Shown: in pieces, positions 23,510 through 28,450 of the stretch | Numbering within the stretch: the first letter of the stretch is position 1 | Layout: each line of letters begins with the position of its first letter | Assembly: GCF_000143415.4 (NCBI RefSeq) | Contig: NW_003314283.1 | Coordinates: 1,047,734-1,111,733, forward strand | Source of the DNA: Selaginella moellendorffii | Lineage: Eukaryota; Plantae; Lycopodiophyta | Reading direction: 5' to 3' | DNA: 64,000 nt | The notes under the pieces: model-generated | The model's database searches: none | Seen by the model: only the letters and a program-made list of their open reading frames with translations | What the model was told of the DNA's origin: nothing | Position numbers and translations under genes: made by a program

Positions 23510-25161
23510 TCAGCCAAGGTTGCAAACTTATATATTGGAAATCTTTTCCCCCGTGTTTCGCAAGCAACGAACATGTTACGTTTAAAGCTCGCTGCTGTTT
23601 GCTGTTTGATTGTCTCCTTTTACTTTTCCTCTGTGATTTTTTTTTCCTTTTTTGCTCGGAAAACATATATAAAAACGATAGAGAGACAAATTTGCATGTC
23701 AATAACTGTGGCATGATCAAAGCAAATCGCCCATCGAGATTTCAGGATTAGTTGCTACCGTTACCAAAGCGCGAAAAAGAAAAAACTTGATATTTTGGTT
23801 TTCTGGTGGAAAGCCTCGCGTCACAGGTGGTATAGTTTTTCCCCCGCCGCCCCCGCGCGTGTTCTTTGCGTTGATCGAGATCACGGGGCCGTACAGAGAG
23901 CCTGAGAGCCTTTTCCTGCGAGACCCCTCGTACGGAGGCCAGAACATGGCGGGCATGTGACACAAGGTTGAAAATTTTGGAAGTTTCGCTCAGACTTTGG
24001 CCACCGTCGGGCAGACAAAACAGACGAGATCATTTCACGACGCTCGCAGCTTTCACACCTCTTTTATTTTTATAATTCTATTTTGTTTTCTTTATTTACG
24101 GTTGACTTTATGTGTTTGACTTATTGTTGTTGTAAAAAAATAGATATAAATTGTAACTTGGTCAGCAACACACTAAAAAGCCAACGCATTCAAGAGCCAT
24201 GGTAATTTTCGAGAATTATTCAAATGAAATAATATGAAATAAAAATGTTATTTTTTCTAAGCACCACCGTACCACCACACAATGTTTTAGATCGTGCATT
24301 GGTTTGACATTTTTGTAAGGCATTAAGTGCCACCATGTGTTTTGATTCGGTCTATAATATTCTAGATTTTAAATTCTCCTGTGCTCGCCAATGCACACCC
24401 CACTGATCAGACAAAGATGCAAGCAAAGTTTACGTAGAGCAAAAATTCGAGGAAAGAATTAAAAGGATGAAAGAGCAAAAGCCACAGCGGTGTCTTTGAA
24501 GACAAAGGAAGCAAGCACACTGACATGGGAATATCTCAGAAACAAAGAAAAGATTCGTAGCGTAGCATCGTGTTGGACGCTATAATTTCTTTGGCGCACG
24601 GTAGCGACCGGCTTTGTCAAAAGATGCACGCCTTGGAGCAGTGAAAATGGAGAAGTTTCCACTGTGATCTCAATCGACCGAGTCGACCGATACAATTCAA
24701 ACCGGAGCTCTGGCAAAGGCTGACGCATCTTGACTTGGGCGATCGATCTACATCGGTGGAAACTCGCGAGCCCGACTGTAGAAGCACGATGAATAGATCT
24801 GGGATTAGTTTAAGCCGCTTAGGAAGCTTCCCGGATTAGAGAAAAGGAAGAAACTCGATGAATCTAAAAAGCAACAAAAACCAGACCTTCGGCAGCAACG
24901 CAAGTTCACACAACTTTGATCGTTTGATGGAAACGGTACTTTATCTCTCTTTTCTCTTCTTTTTTTTTCTTCTGTAAAGCGAGACTTAGATCGGCACCGA
25001 TCTGCAAAGCAGCTTTCAAACAGAGAGAGAGAGCCAACATAAAAAATAAAATAAAAACTCAAGAACTCTACTTAGAAGAAACATATACAGCAAGCTTTTC
25101 TTCTTCACCTTTGTCTATCAGACCTGATTGACGCGATCGTCGAGATTATAGCGGATGATCT

Positions 25162-25999
25162 TCACGAGCAGCCGAAGCAGTTGCAGGAAACCGGAGTGAA
25201 GGAGCAAAGGCCGAATGGGACCCTTCTCAGCGAGCAATTGATGTTGTAACAGCATCCTGTTAGAAAGCAATACTTCCTTGTCTGGTCCGTGCAGCACGTA
25301 CATGGCGCGCACTCACGAAAATCTCCCAGCCTCCTCCTCCTGGCACTGCTGTTATTGAAAGCCTCATAACGAATGCCTGACGCTGGAAACGTATCACCCG
25401 GGGCACTTTGATTGGAAGCTAGCGGAATTTGGCTAGAGCTAGACTCGCACTGCAGAGAACAAAGAGAAAAGATCGAAAACGAGAAAGTGTGAGTGACAAA
25501 AAATGGGTGGTTTTTTAATGCGAGACACAGTCAACCAACAACAACAGAGATCATAGCTAAACACCTGTGTCAATCGATAGGAAAAAATACAAAAGAAAGA
25601 GAGAAAGCAAACGAATAAAAGCATGTAACATCTCCTAGCTACCTCTGACCAACAGCGCAACCTCTTTATGGCGTGAAAGCCCAGCAATTCTAAACAAAGC
25701 TTAAGAACTATTAGAATATAGCATGCGACGCGAGCAAGAAATCCAGTCAATCCAGGCGGAGAAAAGCGAGAAATCCAAGGAAGAACACAAGGCAAACACA
25801 CAGATCATACTATAATTTAGTACTCTACCTGTGCGATTCCTTGCGATTGCGCTCCATCTAGCCGCATCGGGAAACCAATCGGTGAAATATTCACGAAATG
25901 TAGCTTAGATTTCTTACCTGTGAGAGCGGGACTCGCGAGCGCGATCGAAATCACAATGGCCGGCAGCAGCAGCTGCCGCCACAGCAAGCACCGCGCCAT
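25162..25999 (-). CDS. Secreted Cys-rich protein (RRRL + CxxCxCC..CCYxINC..PFGxCSFTPxxCNCFGC family)
   Basis: Phase-consistent exons 25999-25918, 25857-25829, 25449-25162. Signal peptide; C-terminus RRRRLGDFRECAPCTCCTDQTRKYCFLTGCCYNINCSLRRVPFGLCSFTPVSCNCFGCS. Confidence 0.85.
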
Positions 26000-26589: not shown

Positions 26590-27075
26590 ATGGCGATCTT
26601 TAAACCTTTGTTTGTGCTGTCGATCCTTACGCTGCTAGTCGCAGGTTCTCTCTTTTTTAGTTTTCCAATTATCTTACTCGATTTGCTTCGTGTTCTTCCC
26701 AGACACCACGGCAAAGATCTGGTTTCTAGATCACTTTGAAAGAACAAACAATTACCGAGAGGAGCGGCCGGTGAGTATCGAAAACCACGCGATCTCTGTT
26801 GATAAAACTTCGATCCAGAACCGGAAGCTAGCAGGGACGGACCAGTTAAGAGACTGTAAGTAGCAAACACTCACTTTTGAGTTGGCTAGAGATTTTCTCC
26901 GCTTGCTGTAGTTTGCTCTATCCGGCCAAAATGTATACCTACAGGAGCATACGTCGAGTGCATCAATGGAGGACGACTTGGATGCAAGTGTACCTGGATT
27001 TCACGTTGCGTCCCCGCTGCTTCCGAGTGCTACTTCCACACCAGTAAGAAAAACTTCACGTCCTGCGGGTTCTAG
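26590..27075 (+). CDS. Four-exon secreted 8-Cys peptide precursor
   Basis: Exons about 26590-26644, 26703-26770, 26819-26855, 26912-27075, all GT-AG and phase-consistent. Product MAIFKPLFVLSILTLLVADTTAK..ERPNRKLAGTDQLRDFCSIRPKCIPTGAYVECINGGRLGCKCTWISRCVPAASECYFHTSKKNFTSCGF. Confidence 0.78.
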
Positions 27076-27110
27076 CCTCGAGAAAACGAAGCTCTCTGGC
27101 TGATGACTCC

Positions 27111-27912
27111 TTAGTTTGGATGGAGCTTGTTGGAAAACTTGACATCGGGTCCATATTTCTTGAGCAGCGTGTTGTAAGCCTTGAGCTGGCTAGCCTCGTA
27201 TTCTTGAGTCTTGGGATCTGCCATTAGCGTCAGGGAGAACGATATACCTCGCAGTGATATGAACTGGATGATGTAGTATGGAACTCCCAAAACTTTGTCT
27301 TGCTTAAACGACGCCGTCGCAACTCTCCTGACGTACATGGTCATTTCTTGCTTGCCATCGTCGTGTACCAGGCAAGCGTCCCAGGCGTCCTCTTCGGCGT
27401 CGCTGTAGCGAAACATCTCCATCGGGGTCCTCGTTTTCCACTGCCCAGTGTGTGTATTAATGTAAAGGTGGACCTACAATCACGAAAAAAAGAGAGCTTT
27501 TAGAAAACAACATCGCTGATCCCCAAGAAAAAGAGAATCAAAGGATCAGCCTCAGTAAAGGACTTTGTTAGCTCCATCGCTAGAGCTAGATTATCAGGAT
27601 AGATCATCAAGAGAGATCTTTTTTGTCGTCATGGGCAGATTCTAGTGGGCCAAAATCAAACAGCGACAGCCATACCTTTCCGAGTTCTCTCGCTTCCTCG
27701 AGAAAGTCCTGGACGCTGACCTCCGCGCCGGCATTTACCCTAGCGCTCATCGAAATCGCGGCATTCACCGCCGGAATCGCCCGACGCGAGAGCGCAAGAC
27801 ATTCAGCACGCCGATGGAGCAGCGCCGCTGATCCTGGCCTCGCGCAAGACAGAAACCCCTGGTGCGGCGCCGCAATGGGGGAAGCAAGCGCCAAGCCGCT
27901 CAATGCCGCCAT
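27111..27912 (-). CDS. Plastid-targeted ChuX/HutX-like (heme-carrier fold) protein
   Basis: Exons 27912-27676 and 27473-27111. Ala/Ser/Arg-rich transit peptide. Mature part (VQDFLEEARELGKVHLYI..YIIQFIS..EYEASQLKAYNTLLKKYG) resembles cyanobacterial ChuX/HutX proteins as I recall them (LKEFLEACETLG.LRLIV..YAIRFLD..EYE.GQV.AW..L.EKYG). Confidence 0.72.
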
Positions 27913-28450
27913 CGCCACTGTTTAAATAACAAAGCCCTAACAGAATGTTCTCTTTTTTCCGCTTACTTGACAGAGGATATGAGAATATACTACTAACGAA
28001 GAGAATCTTGGGACATTGTGTAACGTAGTTTTTACCTCGTGTGATCCAGCCTGGCTGGCCTTCAAAAGAGCGAGGCTTATAGTAAATCTTTTATTCCAAT
28101 CCATTGTCCTTTCGGCTTCTCTATAGTGGACACACTTACACACAAAGTTCTTCTCTGGAAGAGAGCTATGGCGGTTTGCGGCCAAACTAGGTAGAAAGAA
28201 AATGCGGCTTCTTCTCGAGGTAATCTAATCCGCTAGAGTGTTGGCGCGGCAGCTATCGATTCTTGAGTGTCTCTCACGCCTGACATCGCTGGAATGAGCG
28301 CCATTCAGTGCTGATCTCGAGCGCATTGTGGTGGAACAGGGTATGGCTGCCGCGATCATCATGTAGTGCCTCCGATTTCCAGTGATTTTTCTCGGATTCT
28401 CGACGGCCAGGGGCTGCTAGCACGATATTTCGAGAGATTTCCGGGGCTGA

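Follow-up and report, generated by a model that had tools for sequence, protein, structure and literature searches.

A probable ChuX/HutX-fold protein of endosymbiotic origin in Selaginella moellendorffii with a conserved scaffold and a remodelled ligand face

Introduction

Does the lycophyte Selaginella moellendorffii carry a plastid relative of the bacterial heme carriers ChuX and HutX, and can this protein still be expected to bind heme? The question is raised by a minus-strand gene of two exons at positions 27111-27912 in a 64,000-nucleotide stretch of the genome of this plant (contig NW_003314283.1, positions 1,047,734 to 1,111,733), which is called the window here. The gene has a product of 199 residues, and the original prediction, made from the sequence alone, regarded it as a plastid-targeted heme or tetrapyrrole trafficking factor. 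Our analysis leads to a reading that we hold with good, though not complete, confidence: this is a nuclear gene of endosymbiotic origin whose product has the ChuX/HutX fold, with a conserved scaffold and a ligand face that was probably remodelled in Selaginella.

The buffering and movement of heme and other tetrapyrroles in plastids, and their export from plastids, have been a long-standing gap in plant biology, and to our knowledge very few soluble carriers have been described. The family of this gene, conserved between green algae and conifers, offers a candidate for such handling that can be tested. The fold family itself is already known, and canonical plant members are already tagged PF06228 by automated pipelines. 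What is new is a presequence-bearing eukaryotic subfamily, of cyanobacterial origin and not found in angiosperms, in which the Selaginella member has none of the invariant residues. No published description of a plant, algal or cyanobacterial member was found in the literature searched, in agreement with the earlier remark that no land-plant member had been characterised. It is reported that the bacterial proteins ChuX, ChuS and HutX have a common fold and bind ferric heme 1:1 (PMC10404700), and that HutX transfers heme to HutZ and HutW (PMC12670364).

Homology and predicted fold

Three independent lines, namely sequence, structure and gene structure, place the Selaginella protein in the ChuX/HutX/HemS superfamily. 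In a phmmer search of the sequences in PDB, residues 65-188 matched residues 4-126 of 3fm2, the Ava_4353 protein of Anabaena, with an expectation value (E) of 1.4e-4. This alignment pairs DFLEEARELGKVHL with DFLEACETLGTLRL and EYEASQLK.YNTLLKKYG with EYEPGQVEAWHTLKEKYG, and it reproduces the end-to-end cyanobacterial alignment whose motifs had been named in the original prediction. The same program returned nine matches among 1.84 billion representative sequences: two Selaginella alleles, Taxus (E 3.2e-8), Psilotum, Riccia, Mesostigma, a Leptophrys transcript, one contig protein and a Clostridium repeat protein. The last of these, a triple-tyrosine repeat protein of Clostridium septicum (E 7.9e-8), was rejected as spurious, as it aligned in five repeat stretches and partly with the presequence. 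The identity of the Selaginella protein to the plant members is 20-33%. A profile built from ferns and gymnosperms only, from which the Selaginella query was excluded so that no circularity arises, was aligned by hhalign with residues 60-199 at 98.3% probability (E 1.4e-14, 132 columns), and the family profile of the relatives matched 3fm2 at 3e-34. The region of exon 2 was matched in tblastn by the members from Taxus (8.6e-11), Ceratodon and Psilotum; a word-indexed homologue search with exon 2 found nothing beyond the protein itself.

The comparison with the Pfam family PF06228 (ChuX_HutX, gathering cut-off 25 bits), which had been suggested as a check, gave a divided answer. The Selaginella protein fails it, but six of the seven family relatives pass or approach it (28-44 bits), with 43.5 bits for Taxus, 39.3 for Psilotum, 36.6 for Mesostigma and 28.5 for Synechococcus PCC 7502; Ceratodon is borderline at 24.9. 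A match to Virul_Fac at E 0.18 was dismissed as chance.

The AlphaFold2 model is confident over residues 61-195, with a predicted local distance difference test score (pLDDT) of 81-97 for most of that stretch. In the model, the mature part is predicted to form a single domain of about 135 residues, bounded by an N-terminal and a C-terminal helix, with about eight strands forming an antiparallel sheet between them; the DSSP assignment places the strands within residues 79-162 and the last helix at 173-186. Foldseek matched the model with 3fm2 at E 3.6e-10 (template modelling score 0.81-0.83), with ChuX at 3e-6 and with HutX at 3e-5, and the VIA Z-scores for these three were 17.8, 14.4 and 12.3. 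The top structural matches were exclusively 3fm2, ChuX, 2hqv (AGR_C_4470), 2ph0, HutX, PhuS, 3na2, ChuS and HemS. The matches to the family extend down to Z 8.2, and the first unrelated fold appears at Z 5.9. As modelled, the protein has the single-repeat alpha/beta fold of the ChuX/HutX/HemS structural superfamily. The homology and fold of the ChuX/HutX type that had been proposed are borne out by phmmer, hhalign and both structure comparisons, in which HutX and ChuX themselves were among the matches.

Orthology, distribution and cyanobacterial origin

A single phase-0 intron stands at a homologous codon boundary in the moss Ceratodon, the liverwort Riccia and Selaginella, the junctions being PVGR|TRLIVNTG, TFGR|VRLIVNTG and ELGK|VHLYINTH, respectively. 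The common position and phase establish these genes as orthologues, despite the 20-33% identity. The Selaginella protein belongs to the green-lineage and cyanobacterial subfamily of the Ava_4353 type, as it matches the profile end to end and has the intron after ...G(R/K).

The distribution of the subfamily was examined by two word-indexed profile searches of predicted proteins (5.8 billion proteins). Members were found in the streptophyte algae Mesostigma, Klebsormidium, Closterium, Netrium and Spirogloea, the liverworts Riccia, Calypogeia and Marchantia, the moss Ceratodon, the ferns Adiantum, Ceratopteris and Psilotum, and the gymnosperms Taxus and Cryptomeria. Neither search returned an angiosperm member; the second was biased to euphyllophytes and recovered the rest at 45-85% identity. 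The suggestion that the gene was retained in seed-free plants therefore has to be given up, since the gymnosperms Taxus and Cryptomeria carry the family, and angiosperms are the group without a match.

Two eukaryotic members stand apart from these. One is intronless, has 205 residues and is extended at its N-terminus; its gene was found on a gene-dense eukaryotic contig of 190 kb in ENA, together with WRKY, WLM, protein-kinase and TIR genes. Its source looks like a small-genome green alga of the chlorophyte type, sampled in an environmental metagenome, and the range of the family would then exceed the streptophytes. The other member, from the EukProt transcriptome of the alga-eating amoeba Leptophrys vorax, groups with Closterium (support 100/98) and is probably a transcript of the prey, not an amoebal gene.

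Among prokaryotes, stretches confirmed by tblastn were collected from 185,579 genomes, one per species. The best 80 of 354 such stretches were all cyanobacterial save one from an unclassified uncultured bacterium and one on a 'Tatlockia' contig. This contig, JACCVJ010000365.1 from a metagenome-assembled genome of 'Tatlockia sp.' (Legionellales), has the full cyanobacterial gene order rpsP-khpA-phoH-ChuX-like-DUF6816-ABC with 69% identity to the cyanobacterial query; almost certainly it comes from a cyanobacterium and was mis-binned. A maximum-likelihood tree built on the columns of the mature domain unites the cyanobacteria in a single clade (100/99), adjoining the algal members; the tree has no proteobacterial outgroup, so the direction of the transfer is inferred. 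The cyanobacterial affinity that had been proposed is therefore well founded. Because no prokaryotic proteins other than those of the cyanobacterial Ava_4353 (3fm2) type are closely related, endosymbiotic gene transfer is most likely the origin of the green-lineage family, and it is the simplest one that these sequences suggest.

The cyanobacterial orthologues (X) stand in a block of the order ffh-rpsP-khpA-phoH-X-DUF6816-(MsbA-like ATP-binding cassette exporter) in at least 8 orders; Pseudanabaena and Synechococcus PCC 7502 lack this block. In some cyanobacterial genomes, the start of the ChuX-like gene follows phoH by 3 nucleotides. DUF6816 is the most constant neighbour; it was considered as a co-inherited partner and rejected, as its look-alike clusters were all cyanobacterial, with no plant link. 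A locus for heme uptake or degradation, of the chuW-X-Y or hutW-X-Z kind, was not found around the cyanobacterial genes, in contrast to the chu locus of E. coli, nor around the plant gene, whose neighbours are a gene for an RSN1/OSCA-type channel and a DUF7866 gene.

Divergence of the Selaginella protein

On the terminal branch of Selaginella, 6.7 substitutions per site have accumulated, about 60 times the median of 0.11 and more than the depth of the whole tree from cyanobacteria to plants. With 36 other members as the reference, 42 columns were conserved at 85% or more, and seven of these at 100%. None of the seven invariant columns is kept by Selaginella, the replacements being R81H, V90Q, E92K, N113C, H124T, L125M and W164A. 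Among the 42 conserved columns, 26 are changed, mostly on the strands of the sheet, and the 16 that are kept are mostly in the terminal helices (F70, L71, G78, Y171, Q175, L182, K185, G187 and F192). The signature of the subfamily, which consists of R.(I/L)(I/V)VNTG.(G/A)VLES.T, ..AN, (V/I)DFHL and an invariant Trp, is not found in the Selaginella protein; NTG.(G/A)VLES.T has become NTHTGQWKTRT, and (V/I)DFHL has become KQEMTMY.

The original prediction had noticed that the His expected in the EFHL-type strand appears to be Thr (QEMTMY). This is correct for Thr124, but it is one among many changes of the sheet. In a profile alignment with ChuX of E. coli (Sakai genome), the His of the family corresponds to ChuX His98 and the Asn of VNTG to ChuX His65; His is present at both positions of ChuX, the numbering of which was checked. 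As the Selaginella copy fails PF06228 and has lost all seven invariant residues, not just the His, it is, as far as its residues tell, the family member least suited for inferring heme carriage.

Selective constraint and presequence

The window was compared with the other haplotype of S. moellendorffii. Codons 61-199, which make up the mature domain, show 1 nonsynonymous difference and 4 synonymous ones, corresponding to a ratio of nonsynonymous to synonymous polymorphism (pN/pS) of 0.068 (binomial test of neutrality, p 0.008). For the presequence, the counts are 7 and 2, respectively (pN/pS 1.33). Divergence of the haplotypes was 1.1% in exon 2, 2.5% in the intron and 3.6-12.6% in the flanks. 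Purifying selection, an intact reading frame, precise splicing and a confidently predicted fold suggest that the gene most likely makes a working protein and is not a decaying relic.

Residues 1-60 consist of 16 Ala, 8 Leu, 7 Ser, 6 Arg, 1 Glu and further residues that include no Asp, Thr or Lys, and they are predicted to be disordered (pLDDT 46-55). The cyanobacterial homologues have no presequence and start about 5 residues ahead of the KDFLE helix. The extensions of the orthologues, for example in Psilotum and Riccia, are longer than that of Selaginella and rich in Ser. The presequence points to an organellar location of the protein, presumably the plastid in view of the cyanobacterial ancestry and the Ser-rich extensions of the orthologues.

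Gene structure, transcripts and annotation

The gene of two exons with a presequence-like N-terminus was confirmed as it had been drawn originally, and its features are given in Table 1. The allelic protein SELMODRAFT_442932, of 199 residues, has an identical two-exon structure, and tblastn with it found no second copy of the gene in the window. Contigs from four public assemblies of transcriptome size, from four studies, were compared with positions 26700-28300. The splice joint 27675-27474 was exact in all four, which identifies the contigs as RNA and shows that the gene is transcribed, with the 199-residue model as its expressed form. The contigs are continuous over 27136-27471 and have their 5' ends at 27927-27936. 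Two contigs vary over 27030-27165, a sign that the alleles of both haplotypes occur in the RNA.

The RefSeq model XP_024534261.1 (215 residues) was reconstructed exactly from the window sequence as the window allele minus 27186-27247. This removal causes a frameshift that leads to a stop ending at 27001, and the conserved C-terminal helix is lost. A joint across the segment was absent from all four RNA assemblies, and the segment was retained in all RNA contigs, so it is coding sequence in this gene. The RefSeq model thus looks wrong and the older 199-residue model right, and a correction of the RefSeq gene model is one outcome of this analysis.

Table 1. Features of the ChuX/HutX-like gene and its transcript (positions in the window)
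Feature	Position	Strand	Remarks
Whole coding sequence (CDS), ATG to TAA	27111..27912	-	Allele of SELMODRAFT_442932 / LOC9642630; both exons matched by tblastn with SELMODRAFT_442932
Exon 1, 79 codons	27912-27676	-	ATG at 27912-27910
Intron, 202 nucleotides, GT..AG, phase 0	27474..27675	-	Sole intron of the coding region; removed in 4/4 RNA assemblies; homologous position in moss and liverwort orthologues
Exon 2, codons 80-199 and TAA	27111..27473	-	TAA at 27113-27111; encodes the beta sheet and the last helix of the ChuX/HutX fold
Presequence, transit-peptide-like, codons 1-60	27733..27912	-	Rich in Ala, Ser, Arg and Leu, one acidic residue; absent from cyanobacterial homologues
N-terminal helix of mature domain, codons 64-79, EVSVQDFLEEARELGK	27676..27723	-	DSSP helix 67-77; aligned with DFLEACETLG of 3fm2
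Codons 85-89, NTHTG	27444..27458	-	Degenerate remnant of NTG.(G/A)VLES.T; Asn85 aligned with ChuX His65; His87 new
Codon 124, ACC (Thr)	27339..27341	-	In place of the family-invariant His of (V/I)DFHL; aligned with ChuX His98
C-terminal helix motif, codons 170-187, EYEASQLKAYNTLLKKYG	27150..27203	-	Conserved in the family, kept in Selaginella
Extra intron of RefSeq model XP_024534261.1, 62 nucleotides, GT..AG	27186..27247	-	Kept in every RNA contig seen; coding here
Short 5' untranslated region (UTR)	27913..27936	-	End of contig X1 at 27936, then adapter; ends of contigs X2 and X5 at 27927
3' UTR	26875..27110	-	55-nucleotide intron (26936-26990) spliced in run X6

A joint across 26828-26874 (47 nucleotides), 3' of the stop codon, was seen in contigs X2, X5 and X6. 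The joint across 26936-26990 belongs to an intron of the 3' UTR, since the X6 contig runs on into the CDS. Head to head with the gene, on the plus strand from about 28179, lies the gene for the RSN1/OSCA-type membrane channel (PF13967, PF14703 and PF02714). Its RNA contigs begin at about 28179-28191, and the two genes would thus have a common promoter of about 250 bp (about 27937-28190). This shared promoter region shows the highest divergence between the haplotypes, 12.6% including indels. The downstream neighbour is the DUF7866 gene for a protein of 132 residues, at about 24976-25998 on the minus strand, as projected from the other haplotype.

Discussion

By analogy with ChuX and HutX, the mature form of the family protein would be a soluble dimer of the stroma, each subunit holding a single heme-like tetrapyrrole against the concave side of its sheet, with the invariant His of DFHL, the counterpart of ChuX His98, as a possible ligand. 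It may then buffer the tetrapyrrole or hand it to a partner; a HutX-like hand-off mechanism in the green lineage is a mere analogy. Heme binding is a reasonable guess for the family and doubtful for the Selaginella copy. In this copy, the two terminal helices and the hydrophobic core of the scaffold have been kept and the face of the sheet has been rewritten; most likely the ligand or the mode of ligation has changed and the protein is not a canonical His-ligated heme carrier. We doubt that it carries heme in the canonical His-dependent way.

What the Selaginella protein may do instead can be explained in more than one way. Tentatively, at somewhat less than an even chance, we suggest that a burst of substitutions rebuilt the entire ligand face and turned the scaffold to a new function with a ligand other than His-bound heme, and that the family as a whole is an unrecognised factor of plastid tetrapyrrole handling which flowering plants have discarded. 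What is bound now might be a tetrapyrrole without metal or with an open chain, a product of chlorophyll breakdown, a ligand that is no tetrapyrrole at all, or another protein. Other plastid functions, such as the flavodiiron proteins, have been lost in angiosperms in a similar pattern.

It is doubtful, by comparison, that the Selaginella protein itself is a plastid carrier of heme or another tetrapyrrole in the manner of HutX and ChuX, with a different axial ligand. Heme-binding proteins tolerate swaps of the ligand, and His87 (two residues from Asn85), His116, Tyr126 and Met123 or Met125 are candidates; His87, at i+2 from the position of ChuX His65, would face the same side of the strand. The preserved fold and the purifying selection on the mature domain would suit such a carrier as well. 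However, the change of all seven invariant residues and of 26 of the 42 highly conserved ones goes far beyond the swap of a ligand, the branch is about 60 times the median, and the protein has no profile match to any heme-binding family in Pfam or NCBIfam. Heme binding is itself putative, by analogy, in the canonical members.

Mitochondrial or dual targeting, instead of the plastid location preferred here, is unlikely. The composition of the presequence (16 Ala, 8 Leu, 6 Arg, neither Thr nor Lys, and one acidic residue per 60) gives this possibility some weight, since it fits a mitochondrial presequence no worse than a chloroplast transit peptide. The ancestry of the gene is cyanobacterial, however, and the orthologues have longer, Ser-rich extensions in the style of chloroplast transit peptides.

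That the gene is a decaying relic, which lost its ancestral role, drifts under relaxed selection and is transcribed without function, is quite improbable. The loss of every family-invariant residue on an extreme branch and the lack of a Pfam match would be expected of a relic, and an orthologue from another Selaginella species was not recovered in the homologue searches. On the other hand, the frame is intact, all four studies show exact splicing of the conserved intron, RNA of both alleles is seen, and the mature domain has a pN/pS of 0.068 (p 0.008) while the presequence evolves freely. Exon 2 diverges less than the intron and the flanks, and the fold is confidently predicted. Moreover, neutral drift would not be expected to reach 6.7 substitutions per site and leave the frame free of stops and shifts.

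Least credible of all is an origin of the Selaginella gene by horizontal acquisition or as an ancient paralogue from another ChuX-like lineage, which the low identity to plant members and the unsupported placement in the tree might suggest, but which was rejected on the strength of the intron whose position and phase match moss and liverwort, and which also disagrees with the eukaryotic presequence, with best matches among plants and no closer relative elsewhere in the 1.84 billion representatives, and with a canonical Selaginella copy seen in none of the searches.

Several points weigh against the reading of a ChuX/HutX-fold protein of endosymbiotic origin with a remodelled ligand face. In Pfam and NCBIfam, searched with the exon translations, the full-length protein and its mature portion, nothing relevant was found, and PF06228 gave no match at E up to 10. 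The AlphaFold2 model itself leans on the alignment of canonical family members. The alignment with ChuX on which the mapping of the His depends has 57.5% probability, and ChuX His65 and His98 are reportedly the two residues implicated in heme binding (Suits et al. 2009). Ligand binding throughout the subfamily, 3fm2 included, is assumed by analogy, and the cyanobacterial neighbourhood is one of housekeeping genes with no link to heme uptake. The Arg/Ala/Leu-rich presequence of Selaginella, having no Thr, could be mitochondrial. The selection test of the mature domain counts five substitutions in total, and the absence from angiosperms comes from word-indexed searches of predicted proteins, not from genome-level tblastn.

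The Selaginella copy is a natural experiment, in which the fold is the same, the invariant pocket residues are all replaced and selection persists. From it one can learn which residues are important in ligand binding and whether such a scaffold lends itself to a new use. Canonical members are present in tractable species, namely Marchantia, Ceratodon/Physcomitrium and Ceratopteris. The apparent loss in angiosperms would explain why the family is absent from Arabidopsis genetics.

Comparison with known systems

Among the known systems, the LFE_1968-like proteins (PDB 3na2; PF22684) and DUF7676 are language-model neighbours of the Selaginella domain (cosine 0.88-0.90). The structural match of LFE_1968 is weaker (Z 10.0) and more distant than those of 3fm2 and ChuX, and none of the members tested had a hidden Markov model match to PF22684 or DUF7676. 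HemS, ChuS and PhuS are cytoplasmic heme chaperones or degraders of two repeats, both of which adopt the ChuX/HutX fold (Z 8-10); the family profile was aligned with the N-terminal repeat of ChuS at 84% probability. These proteins are duplicated and have about 340 residues, whereas the plant protein is a single repeat and would need dimerisation to mimic them.

The fold is also that of HutX from Vibrio cholerae (PDB 5exv), with Z 12.3 and a Foldseek E of 3e-5. The HutX equivalog TIGR04108 of NCBIfam has a cut-off of 110 bits, far above the scores of Psilotum (22.9) and Synechococcus PCC 7502 (17.9), and Selaginella gave no match. Partner genes for HutZ or HutW do not adjoin the cyanobacterial orthologues.

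ChuX of E. coli O157:H7 (PDB 2ovi and 6u9j), which binds heme in the cytoplasm and is encoded in the chu locus for heme utilisation, also has the same fold (Z 14.4, root-mean-square deviation 2.0 Å over 115 residues). Its family, PF06228, is also passed by the canonical plant members, whose His is aligned with ChuX His98. The identity is about 10-14%; the N-terminus of ChuX extends about 30 residues further, and the chuX gene stands between chuW and chuY in a heme-uptake locus. In Selaginella, which fails PF06228, the position of His98 is occupied by Thr.

The closest known protein is Ava_4353 of Anabaena variabilis (PDB 3fm2), named a 'putative heme-binding protein' by the Joint Center for Structural Genomics, which is the best structural match (Z 17.8, root-mean-square deviation 2.5 Å over 130 residues). 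NCBI names the cyanobacterial orthologues 'ChuX/HutX family heme-like substrate-binding protein', e.g., WP_015168471.1. Ava_4353 and the cyanobacterial orthologues have no presequence and have kept the NTG..VLE and FHL motifs that are lost in Selaginella. Ava_4353 and the Selaginella protein have the same domain length, the same terminal helices and the common motif EY..GQ......L..KYG.

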